This document shows, piece by piece, positions 2,637-24,943 of a stretch of DNA of 64,000 bases. Position 1 is the first letter of the stretch; every line of letters begins with the position of its first letter. The stretch spans positions 124,001-188,000 of IMG/VR virus record IMGVR_UViG_3300032323_001214. One strand, 5' to 3'. Both the position numbers and the translations under genes were made by a program. Under the pieces are notes generated by a model. That model searched no databases, was not told the DNA's origin, and saw nothing but the letters and a program-made list of their open reading frames with translations.

Positions 2637-5600
2637 ATGTTAAGAGATGTATTTTATTACGGTTTAAAACCAAACGCACACCCAAGAGAAAAACATGCCA
2701 TTGATTTAGCTGATGCTAGACAGCAATGTACTACCGAACATTTTTGGATAATCAATGAACATTGTGACTATAAACATTTTGATTGGGACTGGAGCTTTGA
2801 TTTTTTGCCAGATGAAGATGTCTGGGCAGAAGAACACAACAATGTCTGGCCTAGTCAATATCAGAAAGATAGTGGCACCTGGCTATGTTCAAAAGAATAC
2901 AGTGAAATAATAATTTATCGAGCCGATGTAGATCCAGTACCATTAAAAGATGAGATACTATCTAATTGGAAAATTATAGAATATATTGAAAAAAATAAAT
3001 TCGACTTCAAGTGGCATCCTGACCCAAGCGATCCCCCATATGTATATGTTTTTGGTAATCAGTGGTATCCTGGTACAGTTATGCCTACTGTTGAGTATCA
3101 CGTTAAAGGTGCTACATCACGTAAATACATAACAGAAAATATAGCGCACTTGTTACCTATACCTAAATTATTCAACATACTGCACGAAGTAGAATCATTT
3201 GATTATAGTTGGCGTCCTGACCCAACAAGTCCCCCTTACATATATGTATTTGGTAATACTCAATATCCTGCAAGTGTGATGCCTACAATAGAATTTCACG
3301 TAGAAGGTGCAACCGAACGTAAATTTATTGAAAATATAAAACCAAAACTAGTACAGCATCCTCAAGATTTTACTATACTTGATGATATCGATCCTGATAG
3401 CTTTGACTTCAGTTGGGTTCCTGATCCAAATGCGCCCCCATATATTTACGTATGGGGCAATCAATGGAATAAACCTGAAGACAAGGCAAGTATACAATAT
3501 GCAGTAGAAGGTGCAACTGAATATAAGTATATGGAAAAGCGAGTTAAACGCAAGCCTTCAATGACAAATTGGACAATCCCACATCAGGTAGTACGACAGA
3601 GTTTTGATTTTAGTTGGGAACCAAATCCTAACGACCCTCCATATTTGTATCAATTTGGTTCGCAATGGCAAAAGACAGGTGGACCTATTTTTACTGCACC
3701 TGGATGTAATACGGATACTGAAATCAAATATATTAATGTCATTAGCAGTAAACGAATTCCTGATGTTGAAAATAAAAATTGGAAAACGTTGTTACCTATA
3801 GCAAAATTTGATTATAGCTGGCACCCTGACAGCACAGAAGAACCATACATCTATGTTTTTGGTAATCAGTGGAATAGTGCTGAGTTAGAACCAACTATAG
3901 AGTATCGTGTACCTGGTGCAACACAGAAAAAATATGTTCATGATGTTGTAGCAGAAGTAGCTGCATATGAAGAGGGTTGGGAACTGATAGAAGAAATTCA
4001 CACCTTTGATTTTAGCTGGAGACCTAATCCAACTGATCCTCCCTACATATATGTGTTTGGTACTACTCAGTATCCCGGAACAATAATGCCATCAGTAAAA
4101 CTACATAAAGCTGGCGCAACACAAGAAAAGTTTATAGACGATATTGTAGCAAAACTTGTACAGAAACCTGAGTTATTTAAGAATACTGAGTTGATTAAAG
4201 AGTTTGATTATTCATGGAGACCGAATCCTAAGGATCCCCCATTCGTGTATCAGTTTGGTACACAATGGGCTAAAACACATGGTCCACAATTTACGGTAGA
4301 GGGGGCACTTGAGCACAAGTTTATTAGTGAACCTGTTGCTACTATTTTACCTGACATGTCTTATTGGGAAATTCCTAAAGATGTAGATACAACTAAGTTT
4401 GACTTTAGTTGGCACCCTGATAGTACTAGCCCTCCCTACATATATCAGTTTGGTACTATACTTGATGAAGATGATGGTCCTAAATATATTGTACCCGGCA
4501 ATACTGGTATAATTGTTAAACTTGAACGTCCAGAGATTATTCTTTCTGAATTAGATTTTCCTAAGTACTACTTAAAAACAACACTAGAAGATTTGATTGA
4601 AGAACACGAAGGTGAGATATTTTGGGCATTGAATCCAGAACTTGATTATTCTAATTTTGACTTCAAGTGGGTTCCAGATAAACAAAATGTTTATCACGTA
4701 AACGCATTTGGTAGTAAAGATAACATCAACACTCAAACTTACTTTGTTAACGGTAAGATGTGGCAGCGTGGATACAAAGATATAAACTACATCGAGGATA
4801 AAACAATTGATATTAGAACTAAAATTGATATGTTCTTTGTTGATAGAGGTAACAGCGAATCCAATGAGAGATTTGAAAAACTAAAAGAAAAACATAGTAA
4901 TATAATTAAGACACGATATTTAAATAGTTGGGTTGATACCATTAACCGTTGTATTAAAAAATCAAACACTAATTTATGTTGGATACTGAATAGTGAATTA
5001 GATTATAGTGAATTTGAATTTGATTTTTATCCTAGCCCATGGCAAATGAGACATGTGCATGTATTTGGTACTCAGTGGAGTCACTGGGGTACAACATTTA
5101 TGGTTAATAAAAACTCATTTGCAGATGATACCAAATATATCAAAATCATTGAGCATTTGAGCAACTTGAATTTTGTTAAGAGAAGAACGGCAAAAGCATC
5201 TAATTGTCTGTATAATATTTACGTGATAGATCATAAAAACAGTCACACACCAGATGTTGTAAAGCAGTTAGAAAGTAAAGCTACTGGTAAACAAGTAACT
5301 GTAGTTAAGTATGATACTAGCTATCTAAAAACATTTAAGGAAATTTTAAGATCATGTGAGAACAAAAACGAACATTATATTTGGGTTTGTGCAAGTGTGT
5401 GTGATTATGAAAATTTTGATTTTACATATGTGTGCGATCCGTTTGCAAAAGAGCAGTTGCATGTGTTCCCTAGTGATAAGCAAAAGTTTGGAGATACCTT
5501 TTTAATCGATGTTAATAAACTACGTGATTTGATTTCTAACATGTCAATGTTAGAAGACTATGAAAAAATAAATTATAATCAACATCAACGAGCTAAAAGA

Positions 5601-6569
5601 TTACCTGCTCCTAAAATTACAAGTTTAGATGATACTCACGTTAAAGATGCTAGCCAGCAGTTTGACTTCCCCTATGCAATACTTACAACACATGACAATA
5701 CTAATTTACAGGAAGTTGACCATGAACCAATGAGTTTATGGACTCCGGACAGTAAAAACTTAATTATCACCAGTACTGGTGCAACGAGAGTAGTAGTTCC
5801 TCAAGAAGCAAAGAACTATATAGAACGTGAGTTATATGATTACCCATATATAACTAGTTCTAGTAAACTTGCAAAATCTAAGCCACTGGATATAGTCTTC
5901 CTAAGCAACGGTGAAACTGGTGCTGACGAGAACTATGAACACTTACTAAAAGTGACTAAAGGATTATCCAATCGTGTTGTAAGAGTTGATGGAGTTAACG
6001 GTCGTGTTCAAGCCTACCATGCAGCGGCAGAAGCAAGCGAAACACCATGGATGTTTACTGTTTTTGCTAAGTTGCGTATAGATGATAAATTTGATTTTTC
6101 ATGGCAACCCGACAGATTGCAGGTATCAAAACATTATATTTTCAACGCAACTAATCCAGTCAATGGTTTAGTATACGGTCATCAAGCTATGATTGCTTAT
6201 AACAAAAAAATAGTGTTATCTAATAGTGGCAAGGGACTAGACTTCACGTTGGATGATGAGCACGAAGTTGTTGATATTAATTCAGGAATTGCAGTATACA
6301 ACACGGATGAATATATTACATGGAGAACTGCTTTTAGAGAGGCATTGAAATTAAAAAACACTATAGTCAAAAATCCAAATGACAATGCTTCTATTAGCCG
6401 TTTAATGACATGGTCTACCAAAGGTGACGGAAATTATGGGGAATACAGCGTAAAGGGTGCGTTGGATGCGATTGAATACTATGACGAAGTTAACGGTGAC
6501 ATGGATAAACTTAAATTGAGTTACGAATGGGCATGGCTCAAAGATAAATTTTCCTCATCGACTAAATAA
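2637..6569 (+). CDS. 1310-aa repeat protein with several glycosyltransferase-like (GT-A-derived) domains
   Basis: Eight tandem FD(F/Y)xWxP(D/N)...P(Y/F)xYxFG repeats, then three to four degenerate GT-A-like units; the last begins DIVFLSNGETGADENYEHL. Confidence 0.6.
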   Translation: MLRDVFYYGLKPNAHPREKHAIDLADARQQCTTEHFWIINEHCDYKHFDWDWSFDFLPDEDVWAEEHNNVWPSQYQKDSGTWLCSKEYSEIIIYRADVDPVPLKDEILSNWKIIEYIEKNKFDFKWHPDPSDPPYVYVFGNQWYPGTVMPTVEYHVKGATSRKYITENIAHLLPIPKLFNILHEVESFDYSWRPDPTSPPYIYVFGNTQYPASVMPTIEFHVEGATERKFIENIKPKLVQHPQDFTILDDIDPDSFDFSWVPDPNAPPYIYVWGNQWNKPEDKASIQYAVEGATEYKYMEKRVKRKPSMTNWTIPHQVVRQSFDFSWEPNPNDPPYLYQFGSQWQKTGGPIFTAPGCNTDTEIKYINVISSKRIPDVENKNWKTLLPIAKFDYSWHPDSTEEPYIYVFGNQWNSAELEPTIEYRVPGATQKKYVHDVVAEVAAYEEGWELIEEIHTFDFSWRPNPTDPPYIYVFGTTQYPGTIMPSVKLHKAGATQEKFIDDIVAKLVQKPELFKNTELIKEFDYSWRPNPKDPPFVYQFGTQWAKTHGPQFTVEGALEHKFISEPVATILPDMSYWEIPKDVDTTKFDFSWHPDSTSPPYIYQFGTILDEDDGPKYIVPGNTGIIVKLERPEIILSELDFPKYYLKTTLEDLIEEHEGEIFWALNPELDYSNFDFKWVPDKQNVYHVNAFGSKDNINTQTYFVNGKMWQRGYKDINYIEDKTIDIRTKIDMFFVDRGNSESNERFEKLKEKHSNIIKTRYLNSWVDTINRCIKKSNTNLCWILNSELDYSEFEFDFYPSPWQMRHVHVFGTQWSHWGTTFMVNKNSFADDTKYIKIIEHLSNLNFVKRRTAKASNCLYNIYVIDHKNSHTPDVVKQLESKATGKQVTVVKYDTSYLKTFKEILRSCENKNEHYIWVCASVCDYENFDFTYVCDPFAKEQLHVFPSDKQKFGDTFLIDVNKLRDLISNMSMLEDYEKINYNQHQRAKRLPAPKITSLDDTHVKDASQQFDFPYAILTTHDNTNLQEVDHEPMSLWTPDSKNLIITSTGATRVVVPQEAKNYIERELYDYPYITSSSKLAKSKPLDIVFLSNGETGADENYEHLLKVTKGLSNRVVRVDGVNGRVQAYHAAAEASETPWMFTVFAKLRIDDKFDFSWQPDRLQVSKHYIFNATNPVNGLVYGHQAMIAYNKKIVLSNSGKGLDFTLDDEHEVVDINSGIAVYNTDEYITWRTAFREALKLKNTIVKNPNDNASISRLMTWSTKGDGNYGEYSVKGALDAIEYYDEVNGDMDKLKLSYEWAWLKDKFSSSTK

Positions 6570-6592
6570 TTATGTTTACACAGGAGAACCGT

Positions 6593-7276
6593 ATGATAAA
6601 AAATATAGCAATTGCACTTACCGTAGCTGTCATGACAGTCGGGTGTGCCACCAACAATGATTACAAGTTATATGCTGAAACACAGCAAAAAATTGCACAC
6701 GCTCATGCCATGGCTGAGACTGCAAGATATGCTGCTCTCGCAGAAATTGCCAAAACCGCTGATCCCGGTGCACGGGTTGCTGCCGTTATGAGCATTAATT
6801 TTGGATCACAGTCTGGAAACAGCCCTAGACTTAACCAAGTTGCTGCCCCGAAAACATTAGGTGACACTGCCCTACAATGGACTAGCGTGTTGTTGCCAAG
6901 TTTAACACAATTTTACGGTATCAGTGCTAACCGTCAAGTTGCTATTACACAAAGCAACAATCAAGCAGCCATAGCACAGAGTACAAATGCAACATTTGCC
7001 ACAATGAACAGCAATATGGCAAAATCTAATACTGACATTGCTACCGCTGGATTTACGGCTGTAACCAATGTAGCTAACACAGGTATTGCACAAGTAGGAG
7101 CAACTGCGGCGGCTGGATTGACTGCGGTTACCACAGTAAATGCTAATAGCAACACTGCTATTACCAACGTAGCTAATGCGGCTAATAACAGTATTAAAGC
7201 AGTTGCGGATATTATTCCTTTGTTGCAACCAAATGTAACCACAACTACTACGAATAATAACACTGTGGCACCATAA
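6593..7276 (+). CDS. Ala/Thr/Asn-rich predicted lipoprotein
   Basis: GGAG Shine-Dalgarno before ATG 6593; signal peptide with lipobox TVGC. Confidence 0.7.
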   Translation: MIKNIAIALTVAVMTVGCATNNDYKLYAETQQKIAHAHAMAETARYAALAEIAKTADPGARVAAVMSINFGSQSGNSPRLNQVAAPKTLGDTALQWTSVLLPSLTQFYGISANRQVAITQSNNQAAIAQSTNATFATMNSNMAKSNTDIATAGFTAVTNVANTGIAQVGATAAAGLTAVTTVNANSNTAITNVANAANNSIKAVADIIPLLQPNVTTTTTNNNTVAP

Positions 7277-7290
7277 TATACCCAAAATAG

Positions 7291-7319
7291 TTGTAATCAA
7301 CTATGTGTTATAATATAAT
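7291..7319 (+). promoter_or_regulatory. sigma70-type promoter for the tmRNA locus
   Basis: TTGTAA-N17-TATAAT. Confidence 0.7.
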
Positions 7320-7325
7320 GTAAGT

Positions 7326-7390
7326 TAAGACTGTATGAAGTAGACAGAAAAGGATTCAAGACGCGGGGGCAGTGCCCGCCAGGTCCACCA
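7326..7390 (+). ncRNA. ssrA: Permuted tmRNA, acceptor piece (T-arm, 3' acceptor strand, encoded CCA); 5' end approximate
   Basis: GACGCGGGGGCAGTGCCCGCCAGGTCCACCA. CAGGTCC pairs with GGGCCTG at 7764 with a G3.U70 pair and A73; GATTCAA pairs with TTGGGTC; GACTGT pairs with ACAGTC. Confidence 0.9.
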
Positions 7391-7402
7391 TAAGGAAATT
7401 TG

Positions 7403-7762
7403 ATGCGTATTAAAGAACTAACCGAGAGTGTGAATATTCCTAGTGTGTTGTATCACGCTACGTACCGTCCATTGCTGAAAAGTATTAGGCAACACGGTTT
7501 AGGCGGAGATAAGGCCCAGGCTAAATGGGAAGATAGCAAGCCCGGTGTAGTCTATCTTGCGTTAGATCCTAACGTTGCGGAAAGTTACGCTGAAACAAGC
7601 GAAGCGGTACCCGACGAATGGTTAGATGAAATCATTATATTGAAGATTTCAACTGCTGGATTGGATCTATCTAAACTCAAGGTAGATGCTAATGTTCTTG
7701 ACAACGAAGGTGATACATTGGAGTATCACGGAGTAATACCCACTAAATTAGTTTCTTTATAA
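7403..7762 (+). CDS. ADP-ribosyltransferase-fold protein (Tpt1/KptA NAD-binding-lobe-like) inside the tmRNA intervening segment
   Basis: AAGGA Shine-Dalgarno directly after CCA; LYHAT..L.SI...GL, VYLA.D...A..YA, IILKI and EYHGVIP match the KptA C-lobe pattern. Confidence 0.65.
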   Translation: MRIKELTESVNIPSVLYHATYRPLLKSIRQHGLGGDKAQAKWEDSKPGVVYLALDPNVAESYAETSEAVPDEWLDEIIILKISTAGLDLSKLKVDANVLDNEGDTLEYHGVIPTKLVSL

Positions 7763-7763
7763 T

Positions 7764-7945
7764 GGGCCTGACACAGGATCGATTGGGTCAAGAGTACGGA
7801 AATGGACAGTCCGGCAATGTAGAAGCCGTTAGGATTGGGGTTACCCGGTCGAAGACACGCAAAAAGTAATCGCAAACGATTCACAATTCCTTCAAGCCGT
7901 TAACGCTTGATAGCGAGGGTGGTACCCTTGTCAAAGAATAACCCA
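7764..7945 (+). ncRNA. ssrA: Permuted tmRNA, coding piece (5' acceptor strand, pk1 region, tag ANDSQFLQAVNA); 3' end approximate
   Basis: GGGCCTGACACAGGATCGA start; resume context AAAAAGTAATC-GCA-AAC-GAT (E. coli AAAAAATAGTC-GCA-AAC-GAC); tag frame 7872-7910 ends TGA TAG. Confidence 0.88.
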
Positions 7946-7969
7946 AATAGGAGTGTACGCTCCTATTTG
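7944..7969. terminator. Hairpin between convergent tmRNA and endonuclease transcripts
   Basis: Perfect 10-bp stem CAAATAGGAG-tgtacg-CTCCTATTTG overlapping the endonuclease stop codon. Confidence 0.55.
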
Positions 7970-8628
7970 TTTGGGTATTCATATGTCCATGTTCCATCAG
8001 GCAAATATTTTCTTTTTCTACCAGTGACCGTCGCTGATTGTTTTCCTGCACTTTTCTTTCCATTCTCAGCCGCAGTTGGATTCGGCAAGCCCTTATTCCA
8101 GGCAGTACGCCCTTTTAATGATTCTCGCAGTTTTAAGTTTGATTTACCCAAAGATTTTTTACCACTACGCACCCCGTTACATTTATGCCCGCATACAAAT
8201 TCTTCTCTTATAGGATGATGACAAAATTCTAATCTAATAAAAACACCATTACAAATGACACATGTATAAGTTCGTTCTTCTTTTGGTTTAGTTTTTGCTT
8301 TTCGATTATATTCAGCTAAATCCTCTCGTTTAGATCCAGACATCGAAAACTTGGACATTGACTTCTGATAATGCCTGTTAAGTAAAAGTGGGTTACCCCA
8401 ATGGTCTTTTATGAGGTTATTTTCAAATTCAAACGCTGATATTTGGTCAACAAAATATGCTAGAATTTCAGAATCATATTCTGAAAAATTGTTTTTAACA
8501 TGCTTAGATGAAGTAAAATAGCAAATACCAAGGTCTTGCTCGGCCACTACTGTATTAGCTGACCTCATTCCTATATAAAATTTTCCTGTCGTGCGATGCT
8601 TCATGATGTAAACATATGGTAAAAACAT
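7963..8628 (-). CDS. Free-standing GIY-YIG (Seg-like) homing endonuclease
   Basis: PYVYIMKHRTTGKFYIGMR..YFTSS..E...I; basic AWNKGLP tail; own ATAAATA promoter (8645-8651, minus strand) and AAGGA Shine-Dalgarno. Confidence 0.85.
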   Translation of the reverse strand: MFLPYVYIMKHRTTGKFYIGMRSANTVVAEQDLGICYFTSSKHVKNNFSEYDSEILAYFVDQISAFEFENNLIKDHWGNPLLLNRHYQKSMSKFSMSGSKREDLAEYNRKAKTKPKEERTYTCVICNGVFIRLEFCHHPIREEFVCGHKCNGVRSGKKSLGKSNLKLRESLKGRTAWNKGLPNPTAAENGKKSAGKQSATVTGRKRKYLPDGTWTYEYPNK

Positions 8629-8820: not shown

Positions 8821-9828
8821 ATGAAAAAACTAACAGCACTATTAGGTGCATTGTTAATATCAACTGTTGCATTCAGTGCAGACATAACAGGTGCAGGTGC
8901 TACCTTCCCATTCCCAATCTATGCCAAGTGGGCAGAAGCCTACAAGAAAGAAACTGGCATTGGGCTTAACTATCAATCAATTGGATCATCCGGCGGCATT
9001 CGTCAAATCAATGCTCGCACAGTGACTTTTGGTGCTACAGACGCTCCAGTCAAGGGCGAAGACTTAGACAAGCAGGGACAGGTGCAGTTTCCTGCTATCA
9101 TCGGCGGAACAGTTCCTGTAGTAAACTTAGATGGTTTTAAACCAGGTGAACTACGCATCACTGGACCAGTTATGGCAGAAGTGTTCTTGGGCACGATCAA
9201 TCGTTGGAATGATCCTAAACTAACAGCATTAAATCCTGGCAAAGCATTGCCAAACGCAGAAATCACAGTGGTGCACCGCGCTGATGGAAGTGGTACAACA
9301 TTTAACTGGACAGACTATCTTGCCACAGTCAGCCCCGAATGGTTACAACGTGCAGGTCGTGGTGCTACAATTAAATGGCCAGCTGCTAGTTCAGTAGGCG
9401 GCAAAGGCAACGAAGGTGTTGCTGCCAACGTGGCCAGAATCAAAGGTAGCATCGGTTATGTAGAGTATGCTTATGTTAAGAAAAACAATATGACTTTTCT
9501 ACAAATACAGAACAAAGCAGGTCGTTGGGTCAGTCCAGATGACTTGACATTTGCCGCAGCCGCTGACGGTGCTGATTGGTTCAGTGTTCCAGGTATGGGA
9601 TTGAGCATTGTGGATCAACGCAATCCCAATGCTTGGCCAGTGAGTTCTGCCAGTTTCATCATCATGTACAAGGATCCTGCTGACAAAAAAGCCAGTCAAG
9701 AAGTGTTGAAGTTTTTTGATTGGGCATTCCGCAACGGCAAGAAAGATGCTATTGATTTAGACTATGTACCATTGCCCGATGCATTGACACGCCAGATCCG
9801 TGAACGTGTTTGGACACAGATCAAATAA
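8821..9828 (+). CDS. pstS: Phosphate ABC transporter periplasmic binding protein PstS
   Basis: Signal peptide; ITGAGATFP.PIY.KW, YQSIGSSGGI, FGATDAP, HRADGSGTTF, GKGNEGVA, IGYVEYAY; GGAG Shine-Dalgarno before ATG 8821. Confidence 0.97.
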   Translation: MKKLTALLGALLISTVAFSADITGAGATFPFPIYAKWAEAYKKETGIGLNYQSIGSSGGIRQINARTVTFGATDAPVKGEDLDKQGQVQFPAIIGGTVPVVNLDGFKPGELRITGPVMAEVFLGTINRWNDPKLTALNPGKALPNAEITVVHRADGSGTTFNWTDYLATVSPEWLQRAGRGATIKWPAASSVGGKGNEGVAANVARIKGSIGYVEYAYVKKNNMTFLQIQNKAGRWVSPDDLTFAAAADGADWFSVPGMGLSIVDQRNPNAWPVSSASFIIMYKDPADKKASQEVLKFFDWAFRNGKKDAIDLDYVPLPDALTRQIRERVWTQIK

Positions 9829-12328: not shown

Positions 12329-13432
12329 ATGGCATCGCCCATCTCTGACAATCTGACAATCACTTCTGTTCAAGTCCGTAAAGCACTATTGACTGCATTC
12401 AAAGCAAAACGTCCCGTATTCTTGTGGGGCCCTCCCGGCATCGGTAAGAGTGAGGTTGTTGCCGAGGTAGCTGAGGAACTTAAAGGTCCTGTAATTGACT
12501 TGCGTATGGCACAGATGGAACCAACTGACATTCGTGGTATCCCTTACTTCAATAAAGATATCAACAAGATGGATTGGGCAGAACCAGTTGACTTGCCAAG
12601 CAAAGAGTTTGCCGCACAATATCCCATTGTTGTTTTGTTCCTTGATGAAATGAACTCAGCACCCCCAGCAGTGCAGGCTGCAGGTTATCAGTTGATTCTG
12701 AACCGTCGTGTTGGTAAGTATGTACTCCCCGATAACGTTGTTATCGTTGCGGCAGGTAATCGTGACAGTGACAAAGGTGTTACATATCGTATGCCGATGC
12801 CCCTCGCTAATCGTTTCGTTCACGTTGAAATGCGAGCCGACTTTGCTTCTTGGCAGAACTGGGCTGTGAACAAAGGCATTCACAAAGACGTTGTTGGCTA
12901 CTTGAGTTTTGCGAAACAAGACTTGTACGACTTTGATAGCAAATCTGCATCACGTGCGTTTGCTACACCTCGTAGCTGGTGCTTTGTGTCTGATTTGTTG
13001 AAGGATGAAGATGATGTTGACACCGACACATTGTTCAACCTCACTGCAGGTGCAGTCGGTGAAGGTCTTGCAGTTAAGTTTGCCGCACACCGAAAAATTG
13101 CAGGTCGTATGCCCGAGCCCTCAGATATTCTGAGTGGTAAAGTCAAGGATCTTGCTGTGAAAGAAATCTCAGCAATGTATTCGTTGACAATTTCTATGTG
13201 CTACGAATTGCGTGATGCACTCGAACACAAGAAAGTGGACAACAAAAAGTTTCACGAAATGGCAGATAACTTCTTCAACTACATCATGGCTAACTTTGAA
13301 ACTGAGTTGGTTGTTATGGGTGCAAAGATTGCATTGAAGACTTACAAACTCCCAATCGAGCCAAGTCAGTTGAAGAACTTTGACGAATTCCATAAGAAGT
13401 ACGGTAAGTACATCGTGGAGGCAGGTAACTGA
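12329..13432 (+). CDS. MoxR-like AAA+ ATPase
   Basis: Walker A GPPGIGKS, DLRMAQMEPTDIRGIP, Walker B LFLDEMN, AAGN, ANRF, ATPRSW. Confidence 0.9.
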   Translation: MASPISDNLTITSVQVRKALLTAFKAKRPVFLWGPPGIGKSEVVAEVAEELKGPVIDLRMAQMEPTDIRGIPYFNKDINKMDWAEPVDLPSKEFAAQYPIVVLFLDEMNSAPPAVQAAGYQLILNRRVGKYVLPDNVVIVAAGNRDSDKGVTYRMPMPLANRFVHVEMRADFASWQNWAVNKGIHKDVVGYLSFAKQDLYDFDSKSASRAFATPRSWCFVSDLLKDEDDVDTDTLFNLTAGAVGEGLAVKFAAHRKIAGRMPEPSDILSGKVKDLAVKEISAMYSLTISMCYELRDALEHKKVDNKKFHEMADNFFNYIMANFETELVVMGAKIALKTYKLPIEPSQLKNFDEFHKKYGKYIVEAGN

Positions 13433-13449
13433 TAGTTACATGCTTTACA

Positions 13450-13482
13450 GGGTGAGTGTAGCAATATGCTCACCCTTTTTTT
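13450..13482 (+). terminator. Intrinsic terminator
   Basis: GGGTGAGTGTA-gcaa-TATGCTCACCC followed by a T-run. Confidence 0.8.
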
Positions 13483-13495
13483 ATTAAGGATTGTT

Positions 13496-13648
13496 ATGTC
13501 AGGTAAAAAGTATTTTTATGCACTTGGTCAACGGACCCGAGCAAATGGTCTTACAAAAGATCAAGGTATGACAATGTACGCTATTGAAAAGGCACAGTTT
13601 TATGCACGGATTGCATTTGACGCAGGTTATCGAGGTTTGTCTCTATGA
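13496..13648 (+). CDS. Small hypothetical protein
   Basis: AAGGA Shine-Dalgarno before ATG 13496; the ORF-track start lies inside the terminator. Confidence 0.6.
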   Translation: MSGKKYFYALGQRTRANGLTKDQGMTMYAIEKAQFYARIAFDAGYRGLSL

Positions 13649-13929
13649 CTGAAAAAAAGAAAATGGAAGTAGTGTTCGCACCAGGCTGTTTCGACCATTT
13701 CGATGGTACGCAGGAAGAATTGGATCAATTGATTAAAGAGATTCAGGAACATGCAGAAAATGGAACTCTGTTTGAAAACTCTAATCCAGTCTCTATTGAG
13801 AATCTGTTAGAAGAATTAAGCGAGGAAGAAGTCGATGACCTGCTAAGTACCATTGAAGGATTGAAACTTGACGGTAATGAAGAATTAGGACTTGCTAACC
13901 TCAATGGTCCTCGCCGAACATTGCAATAA
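13645..13929 (+). CDS. Acidic hypothetical protein
   Basis: ATGA-coupled 94-aa ORF. Confidence 0.75.
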   Translation: MTEKKKMEVVFAPGCFDHFDGTQEELDQLIKEIQEHAENGTLFENSNPVSIENLLEELSEEEVDDLLSTIEGLKLDGNEELGLANLNGPRRTLQ

Positions 13930-13930
13930 T

Positions 13931-13959
13931 TTGACAATAAATCACGGCTGTGCTATAAT
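13931..13959 (+). promoter_or_regulatory. Early promoter of the TTGACAATAAAT family
   Basis: TTGACA-ataaatcacggctgtgc-TATAAT. Confidence 0.9.
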
Positions 13960-13983
13960 GTTAGTAACAGTTAAGGAGTATAT

Positions 13984-15258
13984 ATGAGTGCAGTAATTGA
14001 TAAATCTAAGTCTAAAAAGACACGAAGCGACAAGTTTGAAAAGCTTGTTGGACCCACTGATCCCAAAATTGACTTGCAGGCCCGTGAGCGATTGGTGACC
14101 GCACGTATTGGTCTGTTGTTGCGTCAGTCATTTTTTGGTAATCTCGCTACTCGGCTGACACTAGTAAATGCCGATGAATGGTGTAGTACTGCGGCAACTG
14201 ACGGTTTGAAATTTTATTACAACAGCCGCTTCATTATGATGTTGAAGCCTAAAGAAGTTGAATTCTTAGTTGGTCACGAGGTCCTTCACGTTGTTTACGA
14301 TCACATGGGTCGCCGAGGTACACGTGACCCGCAACTCTTTAACATTGCAAACGATTATGCAGTCAATGCCGATTTGAAGCGACACAAGGTTGGACAATTC
14401 ATTACTACTGTACCTTGCTTGTATGAGCAAAAGTATGATGGCAAATCATCAGAGGAAATTTATGATGACTTGATGAAGAATGTTCAAAAAATTGATATTA
14501 ATTCATTGGTCGACCAAATGATTGACGATCACCTAGACGGTGATGGCGAAGGTGACGGTGAGGGCGATGGTGAAGGCAATGGTAAGCGTCCCAAGATGAG
14601 TCCTGAGGAACGTGAACGTGTTCGGCAAGAAGTTAAGCAAGCAATTATCAATGCCGCACAATCAGCAGAAGCAGGTACTCTACCGCTGGGTGTTGAACGA
14701 CTAATCAAGCAACATGTTAATCCAGTAATGCCCTGGCGTGAACTGATTCAGACTAACTTGACCAGTGCTATTCGCACTGACTTTAGTTGGATGCGTCCAT
14801 CACGTAGGTCTTGGCATATGGATGCTATCATGCCCGGTATGACTCCGGGTGAAGAGATTGACGTGGTTGTTGCAATCGACATGTCAGGCTCTATTTCTAA
14901 TCATCAAGCACAAGCATTCTTGGGTGAGATTGGTGGCATGATGGATAGTTTCGATGGTTACAAGGTCCATGTGTTCTGTTTCGATACTGACACATATAAC
15001 CCGCAAGATTTTACAAGTGAGAATCTTGACTCTATTGATTCATATGAGCCAATGGGCGGTGGCGGTACTGACTTTGATTGTATTTTTGATTATTTGAAGA
15101 AAGTGGGTAATGTGCCCAAGCGGTTGATCTGCTTCACTGACGGTTACCCTTGTGGTTCTTGGGGTGATGCTGATTACTGTGACACTACATGGATCATTCA
15201 TGGTGACCCTAATCCGAATCCCCCGTTCGGTACTTATGCACTGTATGATGAAAAGTGA
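13984..15258 (+). CDS. Metallopeptidase-like domain plus VWA domain (DUF2201-like), MoxR partner
   Basis: TAATDG, HEVLH zincin motif, FNIANDYAVN, GDGE linker, VAIDMSGSI MIDAS, GGGGTDF, FTDGYP. Confidence 0.88.
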   Translation: MSAVIDKSKSKKTRSDKFEKLVGPTDPKIDLQARERLVTARIGLLLRQSFFGNLATRLTLVNADEWCSTAATDGLKFYYNSRFIMMLKPKEVEFLVGHEVLHVVYDHMGRRGTRDPQLFNIANDYAVNADLKRHKVGQFITTVPCLYEQKYDGKSSEEIYDDLMKNVQKIDINSLVDQMIDDHLDGDGEGDGEGDGEGNGKRPKMSPEERERVRQEVKQAIINAAQSAEAGTLPLGVERLIKQHVNPVMPWRELIQTNLTSAIRTDFSWMRPSRRSWHMDAIMPGMTPGEEIDVVVAIDMSGSISNHQAQAFLGEIGGMMDSFDGYKVHVFCFDTDTYNPQDFTSENLDSIDSYEPMGGGGTDFDCIFDYLKKVGNVPKRLICFTDGYPCGSWGDADYCDTTWIIHGDPNPNPPFGTYALYDEK

Positions 15259-24173: not shown

Positions 24174-24569
24174 ATGAGAGCAAAAGAATTTATTACAGAA
24201 CAAAGAACAGATGGACTAACAGTTGTATCTTACTCTTTGCCCAACACCTACATCATGCCTGATTTAAAAAATAATGATTTCTATGAGTTATATAGATTTG
24301 GCGTAGCGTTTGCTGCTGTTAGAGGTGAAGGCGGTCAAGATGACGGTGTTCAAAATGAATTTAAAAATGAATTTCAGGCAGAAACATCTTGGGGAGAGCA
24401 TCAATTAGTTTCTTCCGAATTCGATGAAGACCTAGGCAATACTATTGACAAAACCTTGAAAAAAGTAGGAAAGACTGGTAAAAAATTAGTCACCAGTGCT
24501 AATAGTAATGAAATACCTAACACCAATGTACAATCAACTCTCAAACCCTTTAAAGGATACACAAGATGA
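24174..24569 (+). CDS. Putative head-internal protein, paralogue A
   Basis: Starts MRAKEFITE; ends KPFKGYTR. Confidence 0.6.
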   Translation: MRAKEFITEQRTDGLTVVSYSLPNTYIMPDLKNNDFYELYRFGVAFAAVRGEGGQDDGVQNEFKNEFQAETSWGEHQLVSSEFDEDLGNTIDKTLKKVGKTGKKLVTSANSNEIPNTNVQSTLKPFKGYTR

Positions 24570-24943
24570 GAGCAAATGAATTTGTGTCTGAATCTAAGAT
24601 GGGTAAAATATCTGACCACCAACAACAAGCAACTCGTGGGTTAAATATTTTTTCAAAGAAGATAGACAGCTATGATAGACTATATGATTTAAATCGTTTA
24701 ATGATGGCTGTAGCAAGTAGCGATGGAATAAACCCAATTGAAATGCCTGCAGAAAGTTGGGTAGGTAAACACAATACTGCACACGCCTACACTAAAGAAG
24801 AACAAGATATGCTCAAATTAGCATATGAAGCCGCGGGTCTAGAGTATATAGATATAAACAAAGGTGATTTAGATAGTGAAGAATTAGAGTCAACTAACAC
24901 CCAAAGCATTGCAAAACCCTTCAAGGGCTATAAAAGAAAATAA
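24566..24943 (+). CDS. Putative head-internal protein, paralogue B
   Basis: Starts MRANEFVSE; ends KPFKGYKRK. Confidence 0.6.
   Translation: MRANEFVSESKMGKISDHQQQATRGLNIFSKKIDSYDRLYDLNRLMMAVASSDGINPIEMPAESWVGKHNTAHAYTKEEQDMLKLAYEAAGLEYIDINKGDLDSEELESTNTQSIAKPFKGYKRK

Follow-up and report, generated by a model that had tools for sequence, protein, structure and literature searches.

A gene for a minimal ART-fold protein nested within a permuted phage tmRNA gene: a candidate packaged ADP-ribosyltransferase

The central observation of this study is that an intact protein-coding gene occupies nearly the whole spacer (IVS) of a permuted tmRNA gene in a phage genome. The gene (positions 7403..7762, plus strand, of the 64,000 nt stretch analysed, here called the window) ends with the stop codon TAA at 7760-7762 and codes for a 119-residue minimal ART-fold protein, an assignment based on the ORF list, homologs, dN/dS values and a structure model. 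With about even confidence, we favour an explanation where the product is a minimal NAD+-dependent ADP-ribosyltransferase (ART) of ~105 residues with an H-Y-Y-E set, preceded by an 8-residue T4-type propeptide, so that it would be co-transcribed with the tmRNA, packaged into the head and injected into the next host. Gene, conservation, fold and surroundings are described below as found or modelled, while catalysis, packaging, processing and target are what we infer from them.

The tmRNA gene was identified with cmscan, where the Rfam model RF04321 (tmRNA_permuted) matches positions 7329-7910 with 78.8 bits (gathering score 47, E 2e-13), confirming a first-pass annotation that had placed the ORF in a tmRNA spacer. 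According to the alignment and the sequence, the acceptor piece (7329..7390, plus strand) comprises the T-arm, the 3' acceptor strand CAGGUCC and the discriminator A, and closes with an encoded CCA at 7388-7390 (...CAGGUCCACCA). The coding piece (7764..7943, plus strand, with a provisional 3' end) begins with the 5' acceptor strand GGGCCUG at 7764; the covariance model stops at 7910. The inserted region of the cmscan alignment is an IVS of 373 nt (7391..7763, plus strand), made up of the leader UAAGGAAAUUUG, the ART gene and 1 nt. As the acceptor piece ends at 7390 and the coding piece starts at 7764, the ORF fills 360 of the 373 spacer bases, with its start 12 nt after the CCA and its stop 1 nt before the 5' G of the coding piece. 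The acceptor stem carries a G3:U70 pair, and a tag reading frame (7872..7910, plus strand) runs from the resume codon GCA through the peptide ANDSQFLQAVNA to a UGA stop; the tags of relatives are ANDEQFALAA (called by ARAGORN) and ANDAFYGEMALAA (read from the sequence of locus L010). Thus, a tRNA-like domain scoring above the Rfam threshold, the G3:U70 pair, the encoded CCA and the tag frame characterise a permuted two-piece tmRNA. ARAGORN called a tmRNA gene in a relative with a short IVS and none in the window. Genes of the window type are missed because a protein gene sits in the IVS, and phage tmRNAs of this kind are therefore probably under-annotated.

Permuted tmRNA genes of Alphaproteobacteria and of phages (OM43 phage Melnitz, pelagimyophages) have the same gene order and tRNA-like domain as the window gene, and likewise a G3:U70 pair, an encoded CCA and an AND... 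tag frame. They differ in the IVS, which was short or non-coding in the published work that we found, whereas that of the window holds a protein gene with its own Shine-Dalgarno sequence. In a 2025 tmRNA database paper, an IVS containing a tRNA gene is highlighted as unique, and another is noted for a repetitive element. What the sequence indicates here, namely that the IVS of a permuted tmRNA gene can house a protein-coding gene equipped with a ribosome-binding site, we have not found in any earlier report.

Both genes may be served by a single transcript. A sigma-70-like promoter (TTGTAA-17 nt-TATAAT, 7291..7319, plus strand), called purely as a consensus match (10 of 12 positions), lies just upstream of the tmRNA gene, and the consensus scan of the plus strand between this site and the ORF listed no other promoter-like site. 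A hairpin directly after the coding piece (7944..7969, scored on the minus strand in a terminator-like scan) could be a bidirectional terminator common to the cassette and the convergent endonuclease gene. In the process that we propose, one promoter would give a single precursor consisting of the acceptor piece, the IVS with the mRNA, and the coding piece, and ribosomes would load at the Shine-Dalgarno-like AAGGA (7392..7396, plus strand), which is found directly 3' of the CCA and 6 nt 5' of the ATG. As the tmRNA matures, RNase P would cut at 7763/7764 and the 3' end of the acceptor piece would be trimmed back to the CCA at 7390; because these events fall on both sides of the ORF, one transcript would give a two-piece tmRNA and a short-lived mRNA. 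Metatranscriptome contigs cover 7749-7879, and an exact 45-nt contig ends at 7390. The RNA-library contigs span both tmRNA pieces and not the ORF or IVS, but most are from relatives with short IVSs, and they can show neither absence nor processing of the window cassette.

The same IVS architecture is found at loci L010/L011, L003 and L021. The junctions are identical in the window, L010, L003 and L021 in spite of different flanking genes (between the window and L003, shared synteny of the flanks was not found), and the string CCACCA-TAAGGAAAT is kept in all five related cassettes, L001 included. At least two lineages, which differ in the genes around it, have kept the cassette. As its junctions are nucleotide-identical despite these differing flanks and despite saturation of synonymous sites among the copies (dS 1-2), it has persisted as a unit. 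This speaks against the view that the nesting is without significance, the IVS being a tolerated insertion site where a mobile ART gene has landed, a possibility that we consider rather unlikely but by no means negligible. It gains from the many other contexts in which the ART gene occurs, from the homing endonuclease or transposase genes near several copies, and from L001, where an unrelated 34-residue ORF sits in the IVS and the ART gene lies outside it. Such an origin would concern the meaning of the nesting only and is compatible with a packaged ART.

At the opposite extreme, the nesting might be a regulatory device. Since RNase P would cut 1 nt past the stop and the CCA lies 12 nt before the start, tmRNA maturation could both release the effector mRNA and leave it unprotected, an idea that we put forward as speculative and improbable. 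If true, an mRNA that had lost a few nucleotides at its 3' end would become a non-stop message and the effector would be tagged by the co-transcribed tmRNA, so that effector dose would depend on tmRNA processing and on the capacity for trans-translation in a self-limiting RNA-protein cassette.

Among 60 IMG/VR loci with a homolog, the gene is in a tmRNA IVS at one, and a tmRNA is found ~1 kb away at one. For this count cmscan was re-run on the 60 loci, because the whole-contig search with RF04321 under-calls the ORF-bearing form (L021 scores 45 bits in that search vs 101.6 bits by cmscan). In several related phages the ART gene is nested in or adjoins the tmRNA gene. As most homologs are located away from any tmRNA, a functional partnership is not supported, and the suggestion of the first-pass annotation that the flanking tmRNA is a molecular partner, which also has to accommodate the unrelated ORF in the L001 IVS, is not supported either. 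The association looks like one of shared transcription and processing rather than of demonstrated shared function.

A chance ORF can be excluded because of the conservation and the dN/dS of the gene. The family comprises 236 homologs in one search and 967 cluster representatives in another, mostly phage-borne or viral, and its dN/dS of 0.11-0.21 shows that the gene is under purifying selection. In 50,697 phage records, a nucleotide search with the cassette gave no match and a protein search matched only Lak megaphages (33-38% identity); a PHROGs search assigned no family to the ORF. Five motifs noted at the outset (LYHAT, SIRQHGL, VYLA, IILKI and YHGVIP) are all present in the order then given and coincide with invariant or near-invariant columns in an alignment of 75 sequences. 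Conservation in this alignment delimits an ART core of residues 14-119 (7442..7759, plus strand). With a mean net charge of -7.7, the module is strongly acidic.

The predicted structure (AF2, pLDDT 76.6, pTM 0.70, with residues 1-9 disordered) contains the core of the ART fold. The closest solved counterpart of the model is the NAD+ lobe of Tpt1/KptA. All of the top 17 matches of a Foldseek search of the PDB are Tpt1/KptA structures (E 9e-5 to 2e-3), followed by the ARTs of pertussis, cholera and heat-labile toxins. By VIA-align, residues 11-119 of the model superimpose on residues 91-178 of TkoKptA, which is its C-terminal lobe only, with a Z of 10.6 (further Tpt1/KptA structures: 8.0 and 7.3); CC0527, TreX, DarT and Arr come next. 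Phage ART-like proteins also come up in BFVD and the ESM Atlas, and the matches in these, the PDB and the AlphaFold DB are ART-dominated, some rows being other folds or uncharacterised proteins. The initial proposal of an ART fold near the NAD+ lobe of Tpt1/KptA, with the RNA lobe missing, is borne out by these comparisons. The likeness to Tpt1 is clear by fold and weak by sequence: PF01885 matches the window protein with E 0.064 and 13.7 bits, below the gathering cut-off of 26, it matches 32 of the 75 relatives weakly (best E 0.008), and the family profile reaches E 0.007 against Tpt1 in the PDB.

With Tpt1/KptA the protein shares the first strand-helix unit with its His and Thr (LYHAT here, LYHGT there), the next helix and a GL motif; the invariant H18 and T20 line up with H101 and T103 of CthTpt1, the H-x-T motif of the first strand. 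It differs in having a Tyr where Tpt1 has a His, in its conserved Glu and acidic surface, and in the absence of the N-terminal winged-helix RNA lobe (aa 1-85 in CthTpt1) and of the Arg-His-Arg-Arg tetrad (R18, H19, R68 and R121; PMC6333775). Three residues of the tetrad belong to the absent lobe, and the loop aligned with R121 (GGDKAQAK) is variable with no conserved Arg. Tpt1 identity was rejected on account of the missing lobe and tetrad, the sub-threshold PF01885 match and the acidic module. A split Tpt1 was rejected as well, as searches of the 249.6-kb record turned up neither a second PF01885 piece nor an RNA ligase (PF09414; a search with PF09511, whose controls were silent, carries no information). 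Searches of the same record, which is estimated to be 67% complete, also found no phage-encoded SmpB, NADAR or Macro partner.

For these reasons we consider it very unlikely that the protein is a Tpt1-like enzyme acting on RNA phosphate ends, or one that has the flanking tmRNA, tRNAs or the ribosome-rescue machinery as substrate or partner. The closest solved structure, the conserved His and Thr of the HGT-type motif and the position of the gene in or beside a tmRNA gene in several related phages would fit such an activity. However, the RNA lobe and all counterparts of the CthTpt1 tetrad are absent, neither a further PF01885 fragment nor an RNA ligase or SmpB was found in the record, the charge is negative, and both the distance of most homologs from a tmRNA and the different ORF in the L001 IVS speak against it. 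The earlier proposal of Tpt1-like chemistry on RNA ends is thus not upheld. The acidic surface argues against RNA as the target and in favour of a small molecule or a basic protein.

The candidate active site points to a different group of ARTs. In the alignment of 75 sequences, H18 (codon 7454-7456, plus strand), Y51 (7553-7555) and Y62 (7586-7588) are invariant and E107 (7721-7723) occurs in at least 90%, a set which appears to resemble the diphtheria-toxin/PARP signature. The second Tyr follows the first by 11 residues, as it does in diphtheria toxin, exotoxin A and PARP1, and the residue order and Tyr-Tyr spacing would fit the H-Y-E group. It shares with these ARTs the fold (Z 5-7, both for the minimal members DarT and Arr and for diphtheria-toxin homologs and PARP domains), its conserved His, Tyr and Glu may correspond to theirs, and 9 family members weakly match Pfam Exotox-A_cataly. 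It differs in being much smaller (~105 residues), in showing no significant sequence matches to them, and in that its catalysis is predicted.

A small single-domain protein might instead be a non-catalytic "sponge" for NAD+-derived immune signals or ADP-ribose, with an anti-defence role, and the NADAR and Tad3-like genes that neighbour the L010 copy would suit this. We nevertheless think it highly improbable, as the conserved His, two Tyr and Glu are the set kept by catalytic ARTs, and likeness to known sponge folds was not seen in any fold search.

The proposal that the protein is packaged is derived from its N-terminus and from the type of head that the phage encodes. Codons 1-8 (7403..7426, plus strand) specify MRIKELTE, a putative capsid-targeting propeptide that ends in L-T-E, as in the L/I-x-E motif of gp21. 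In T4, gp21 cleaves after L/I-x-E and 10 N-terminal residues suffice for packaging (PMC9026906); a stretch of about this length with such an ending is found here (MRIKELTE|S). The same record encodes Gp23 (328 bits) and a Peptidase_S77 prohead protease of the gp21 type (97.7 bits), by which genes the phage can be classed as T4-like. Related N-termini occur on 4 other small ORFs (MRAKEFITE at 24174, MRANEFVSE at 24566 and two more elsewhere in the genome). Together with the head genes, they substantiate the capsid-targeting-like character first ascribed to this N-terminus. The strict pattern M[RK]xxE[FLIVM]xxE was observed at 3 N-termini in the genome vs 0.044 expected (P ~1e-5), a count which omits the window ORF, its motif being one residue shorter; a looser pattern includes the ORF and comes without a chance expectation. 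In its form M[RK]xxE[FL]xE, the looser pattern occurs in 35 of 242 homologs.

We propose that the N-terminus would draw the protein into the prohead core, where the gp21-type protease would cut after Glu8, and that the processed protein would be packaged and then injected with the DNA. In the next host it would ADP-ribosylate a target or consume NAD+, acting as a take-over or counter-defence effector like T4 Alt. Prohead-core entry, a gp21 cut behind L/I-x-E and injection together with the DNA would be shared with Alt and the T4 internal proteins IPI-IPIII, and Alt is likewise an injected ART of a T4-like phage. It is, however, a 76-kDa protein of the R-S-E type, unrelated in sequence, and packaging is only inferred for the window protein. 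Genomic contexts suggesting packaging have been described for ~44% of phage ARTs (PMC9503650).

The alternative that bears most directly on packaging is an unpackaged cytoplasmic ART or NADase, made early with the tmRNA, whose N-terminal motif is no targeting signal; we regard this as unlikely, if far from implausible. Head cargo is usually made late, whereas the sole promoter-like site of the cassette is sigma-70-like and so suggests early expression, which counts against packaging; the L001 relative, which lies outside the IVS, has an ATAAATA late-promoter-like motif instead. Furthermore, 189 of 242 homologs have neither the N-terminal M[RK]xxE[FL]xE nor a flanking GVAE, and in some, P0035 and P0041 among them, the ART core is preceded by next to no leader. 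On the other hand, the genome encodes a gp21-type protease and shows an excess of the motif, in its strict form, at N-termini; in the window protein the motif ends in L-x-E and lies in a disordered segment before the fold. Glu-ending linkers also bound the module elsewhere in the family: 18 homologs carry it within a polyprotein, with [KE]QGVAE[GD] on one side or on both. In the literature, a search for the QGVAE linker brought up nothing but unrelated papers. Two polyprotein relatives are located among conflict-type genes, away from head genes, which can be counted against packaging, although such contexts in themselves neither support nor refute it.

The packaged-ART explanation, which we continue to favour, finds a parallel in phage polyvalent and MuF-fused toxins with ART domains. 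Relatives of the module are found inside multi-module proteins of 200-1662 residues, a kind of protein believed to enter the host along with the phage DNA; the window copy differs in that it stands alone.

The family is large (hundreds of clusters), mostly viral and uncharacterised, and the window protein is among the smallest ART-fold proteins that keep the full His-Tyr-Tyr-Glu set. It is thus small enough to be convenient for structural and enzymatic studies, and it is a candidate effector for host take-over or anti-defence. The nested arrangement would represent a natural case of tRNA-style punctuation yielding an mRNA. T4-like propeptides and QGVAE-bounded polyproteins may mark a wider set of packaged cargo in uncultured giant phages, and such signals could serve to predict injected proteins from sequence.

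The ART ORF (7403–7762, + strand; intact, 119 codons), which encodes a protein resembling ADP-ribosyltransferases (ARTs), resides within a permuted, two-piece tmRNA gene. The Rfam covariance model RF04321 matches 7329–7910 (+ strand) with 78.8 bits (gathering score 47; E 2e-13), and its alignment has a single long insertion, which spans the ORF. When this alignment is read against the sequence, the acceptor piece ends at 7390 with CAGGUCC-A-CCA and the coding piece starts at 7764 with GGGCCUG, and the intervening sequence (IVS) is therefore 7391–7763 (373 nt). As the ORF lies inside this insertion, the claim of the first-pass annotation that an ART-like gene occupies the tmRNA spacer holds. 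The ORF fills 360 of the 373 IVS bases, starting 12 nt past the CCA, with a Shine-Dalgarno-like AAGGA (7392–7396) 6 nt upstream of the ATG, and ending 1 nt short of the 5' G of the coding piece. The acceptor and coding strands form a 7 bp acceptor stem with a G3:U70 pair, the marker of alanine identity, and the tag frame, which opens with the resume codon GCA (7872) and closes with UGA (7908–7910), encodes ANDSQFLQAVNA. A sigma-70-like promoter match (TTGTAA-17-TATAAT, 7291–7319) lies directly upstream of the acceptor piece and a hairpin (7944–7969) downstream of the coding piece, such that promoter-like site, acceptor piece, Shine-Dalgarno and ORF, coding piece and hairpin are packed into 680 nt of the same strand; the scan listed no further + strand promoter-like site in the interval from this promoter to the ORF.

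The same arrangement is found in relatives. ART ORFs are nested in a permuted tmRNA IVS in a 76-kb contig (L010/L011; 82% protein identity), a 357-kb contig (L003; 66%) and an IMG/VR contig (L021; 65%), and all nested copies share their junctions, with CCACCA-TAAGGAAAT-(2-3 nt)-ATG on the 5' side and TTA-T[AG]A-T|GGG on the 3' side. Around the cassette, the window, L010 and L003 carry different genes. In a 306-kb contig (L001/L002; 71% identity) the ART gene is not nested, being located 35 nt upstream of the tmRNA gene, and the L001 IVS carries the same CCACCA-TAAGGAAAT leader and ATG followed by an unrelated 34-aa hydrophobic ORF (MIGYISFLLFWIVFGFFYLRRDKSKDTERMANYH; IVS at ~3470–3575), with TTATGAT before the coding piece. 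The IVS may be a general slot for translated genes. ARAGORN calls the L001 tmRNA (tag ANDEQFALAA) but misses every ORF-bearing one, and on the window it reported no tRNA or tmRNA.

Among 60 IMG/VR loci (with 1.5-kb flanks), L021 is the only nested case, and L055 has a standard tmRNA ~1 kb upstream; four other contigs have a compact permuted tmRNA at a distance of ~25 kb from the ART gene. A protein tree places the window, L010 and L001 in one moderately supported group, alongside copies with no nearby tmRNA; L003 and L021 branch immediately next to this group, within the same larger clade. All in all, the nesting is an old and stable trait of a single clade and not a family-wide property. With 1 of 60 loci nested, the suggestion that the tmRNA serves as a partner of the ART is not upheld, and a functional partnership of enzyme and tmRNA is possible but unsupported.

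Several features of these tmRNA loci deserve mention. The tag of the window ends ...QAVNA and may be a weaker degradation signal; those of L010 (ANDAFYGEMALAA) and L001 end in the canonical ...ALAA and that of L003 in ...LVAA. The T-loop of the acceptor piece (7365–7371 in the window; also L001, L003 and L021) reads GGCAGUG or GGCAGUA, not the usual UUCGAxU, and this unusual loop is kept in three lineages; in L010 it is UUCGACU. L001 also has a tRNA with anticodon CUA (4271–4344; 'tRNA-Pyl' in ARAGORN), amber-suppressor-like and ~550 nt downstream of the tmRNA, which may indicate stop-codon recoding. In L010, the closest relative, NADAR, R2K (ATP-grasp) and Tad3-like genes (886–2801) stand ahead of the cassette; this neighbourhood is of anti-defence type and absent from the record of the window.

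Two-piece tmRNA genes are known in phages, such as OM43 phage Melnitz and pelagimyophages (PMC9004378). The 2025 tmRNA database paper, which introduced RF04321, reports an IVS with a tRNA gene as a 'unique feature' and a repetitive element in the longest IVS, and does not mention a protein gene in an IVS (PMC11915505). We found no report of a coding IVS within the literature searchable here, and the nesting of a translated gene in such an IVS appears to be undescribed. In four freshwater metatranscriptomes, the matching contigs, mostly from relatives with IVSs of 29–140 nt, cover only 7313–7405 and 7749–7879; one of them, an exact match of 45 nt, stops at the CCA end (7390). This coverage fits abundant mature tmRNA pieces, but the contigs give no verdict on the fate of the IVS of the window, as they show presence and not absence.

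The ART ORF is a real, conserved gene, single-copy in its genome. A word-indexed search returned 236 homologs (E <= 0.01; identity up to 92%), many on contigs of 100–357 kb, and when 1.84 billion cluster representatives were searched exhaustively with a profile, 967 matched at E <= 0.001 (139 at E <= 1e-30). An alignment of 75 sequences has 16 invariant columns, including L16, Y17, H18, T20, Y51, S61, Y62, A63 and E64, and 22 more kept in at least 90% of the sequences, including E107, Y108 and G110. For the copies inside or beside a tmRNA, dN/dS amounts to 0.11–0.21, with synonymous sites near saturation (dS 1–2).

The family alignment served to build an AlphaFold2 model (mean pLDDT 76.6, pTM 0.70; residues 1–9 below pLDDT 50), which was compared to solved and predicted structures. 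Tpt1/KptA proteins take the first 17 places among the Foldseek matches in the PDB (E 9e-5 to 2e-3; TM by query 0.53–0.59), followed by the pertussis, cholera and heat-labile toxin ARTs. VIA-align, run on PDB representatives without the Foldseek prefilter, ranks TkoKptA first (Z 10.6; model 11–119 on chain 91–178, the C lobe), ahead of Tpt1 enzymes (Z 8.0 and 7.3), CC0527 (7.1) and TreX, LT, DarT and Arr (~6–7). Matches in AlphaFold DB clusters are small uncharacterised proteins, two 'RES domain' proteins (<= 32% identity, TM 0.71) and DarT (DUF4433); in BFVD (viral) they are a 121-aa 'putative RNA 2'-phosphotransferase' of Pseudomonas phage PaBG and proteins of phages G and PBS1, and in the ESM Atlas viral clusters, a few of them labelled PARP or Arr. 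The sequence signal is weak but consistent: PF01885 reaches E 0.064 for the protein itself, 32 of the 75 family members match PF01885 weakly and nine match Exotox-A_cataly, and Tpt1 ranks first (E 0.007) when the family profile is compared to PDB sequences. Structure and sequence together therefore confirm, for the predicted model, the previously proposed ART fold and its nearness to the Tpt1 NAD+ lobe.

Membership in Tpt1 itself is rejected, as the protein aligns to the NAD+ lobe alone; the RNA-binding lobe is missing, just as had been noted. In CthTpt1, the RNA lobe comprises aa 1–85 and the NAD+ lobe aa 86–182, and of the essential tetrad R18, H19 and R68 belong to the former, with R121 as the fourth residue (PMC6333775). 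The loop aligned with R121 is variable in the phage family and lacks a conserved Arg. No PF01885 fragments and no RNA ligase of PF09414 type were found elsewhere in the record. While the RNA-binding surface of Tpt1 is positive, the phage module is acidic (mean net charge -7.7 in 75 homologs; pI of the window protein 4.8). With the tetrad unmatched, the RNA lobe missing and the module acidic, a Tpt1-like action on RNA ends, as suggested by the first-pass annotation, finds no support; its observation is confirmed and its interpretation supported in part. The family conserves a first-strand His, a second-strand Tyr (VYLA), another Tyr 11 residues on (SYAE) and a late-strand Glu (LEYHG). This order and the Tyr-Tyr spacing match diphtheria toxin, exotoxin A and PARP1, and E107 would be the equivalent of the catalytic Glu. 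Judged from the model, the protein is a new, minimal member of the ART family with a predicted NAD+-using chemistry.

The window comes from one virus record of 249,606 bp with an estimated completeness of 67%. This record has genes for a major capsid protein of T4 type (Pfam Gp23, 328 bits) and a prohead protease of T4 gp21 type (Peptidase_S77, 97.7 bits), and eight tRNA genes lie at one end; the cassette occurs in sequencing runs from freshwater and lake metagenomes. T4 gp21 cuts after L/I-x-E, and ten N-terminal residues of IPIII are enough for encapsidation (PMC9026906); T-even phages have diverse internal proteins, with the targeting sequence as their only common feature (PMC3012670). The ART protein starts with MRIKELTE|S, with L-T-E at residues 6–8 in the disordered part of the model. 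Its likeness to other small proteins of this genome stands, as a looser form of this pattern recurs in four other small ORFs, of 131 aa (C1:148174, window 24174; MRAKEFITE), 125 aa (C1:148566, window 24566; MRANEFVSE), 127 aa (C1:192551, outside the window; MKISELLE) and 191 aa (C1:234283, outside; MRFNEILSE), and in a 77-aa ORF adjoining the protease gene (C1:58532, - strand, outside; MKLFEMFE). Of 251 N-termini, 3 carry the strict pattern M[RK]xxE[FLIVM]xxE, where its internal frequency predicts 0.044 (P 1.4e-5); these figures cover the strict pattern only and exclude the ART ORF, whose motif is one residue shorter. The 131-aa and 125-aa ORFs are adjacent (24174–24569 and 24566–24943) and neither matched in Pfam or PHROG; by their starts, which resemble T4-type capsid-targeting propeptides, they are candidate internal head proteins.

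The looser motif is found at the start of 35 of 242 family proteins, and some begin directly with the ART core. Many cluster representatives are multi-module proteins of 200–1662 aa. Among the 242 scanned proteins, which include short and long ones, 18 have an ART module bordered by '...LYKQGVAE|G...', on both sides in nine and on one side only in nine; we found no description of this linker in the literature. Metagenomic relatives P0121–P0154 have modules separated by a repeated ...ISLYKQGVAE[GD]..., and such proteins are probably polyproteins cut after the Glu of the linker. A review of viral NAD+/ADP-ribose systems, in which tmRNA is unmentioned, estimates that ~44% of phage ARTs occur in contexts suggesting head packaging (PMC9503650).

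Other genes of the window include a 1310-aa protein (2637–6569) with ~ten repeats of FDFSW.PDP..PPY.Y.FG and no Pfam match and, just upstream of the cassette, a 234-aa ORF (6572–7276) that may be a lipoprotein, as its N-terminus is signal-peptide-like, with TVGC as a possible lipobox, and its body is rich in Ala, Thr and Asn. Convergent with the cassette, and sharing its hairpin, is a 221-aa ORF (7963–8628, - strand) that matches homing-endonuclease family phrog_314 (PHROG, E 1.2e-8), with a GIY-YIG-like start by eye. Auxiliary genes in the same region are a PstS-like phosphate-binding protein gene (8821–9828) and, at 12329–15258, a MoxR-type AAA ATPase gene and a gene with DUF2201 metallopeptidase-like and VWA domains. 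A freshwater-2 motif (RF02980, 59869–59946; 61.9 bits vs 49.9) is probably a cis-regulatory leader, as it ends in AAGGA...AUG.

Two-piece tmRNAs mature by RNase P cleavage at the 5' end of the coding piece and by 3' trimming to CCA. From this we infer that the tmRNA precursor would double as the mRNA of the ART, and that maturation would cut on either side of the ORF. The protein would be directed into the prohead and cleaved behind Glu8; after packaging and injection it would use NAD+ to act on a host target. Timing is the main weakness of this mechanism, as the promoter match of the cassette is of early type; in the L001 copy, which lies outside the IVS, a late-promoter-like motif, ATAAATA, is located 5 nt upstream of the ATG. 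With a leader of 12 nt and no 3' untranslated region, the excised mRNA would be short-lived, which would fit a low-dose, potentially toxic enzyme.
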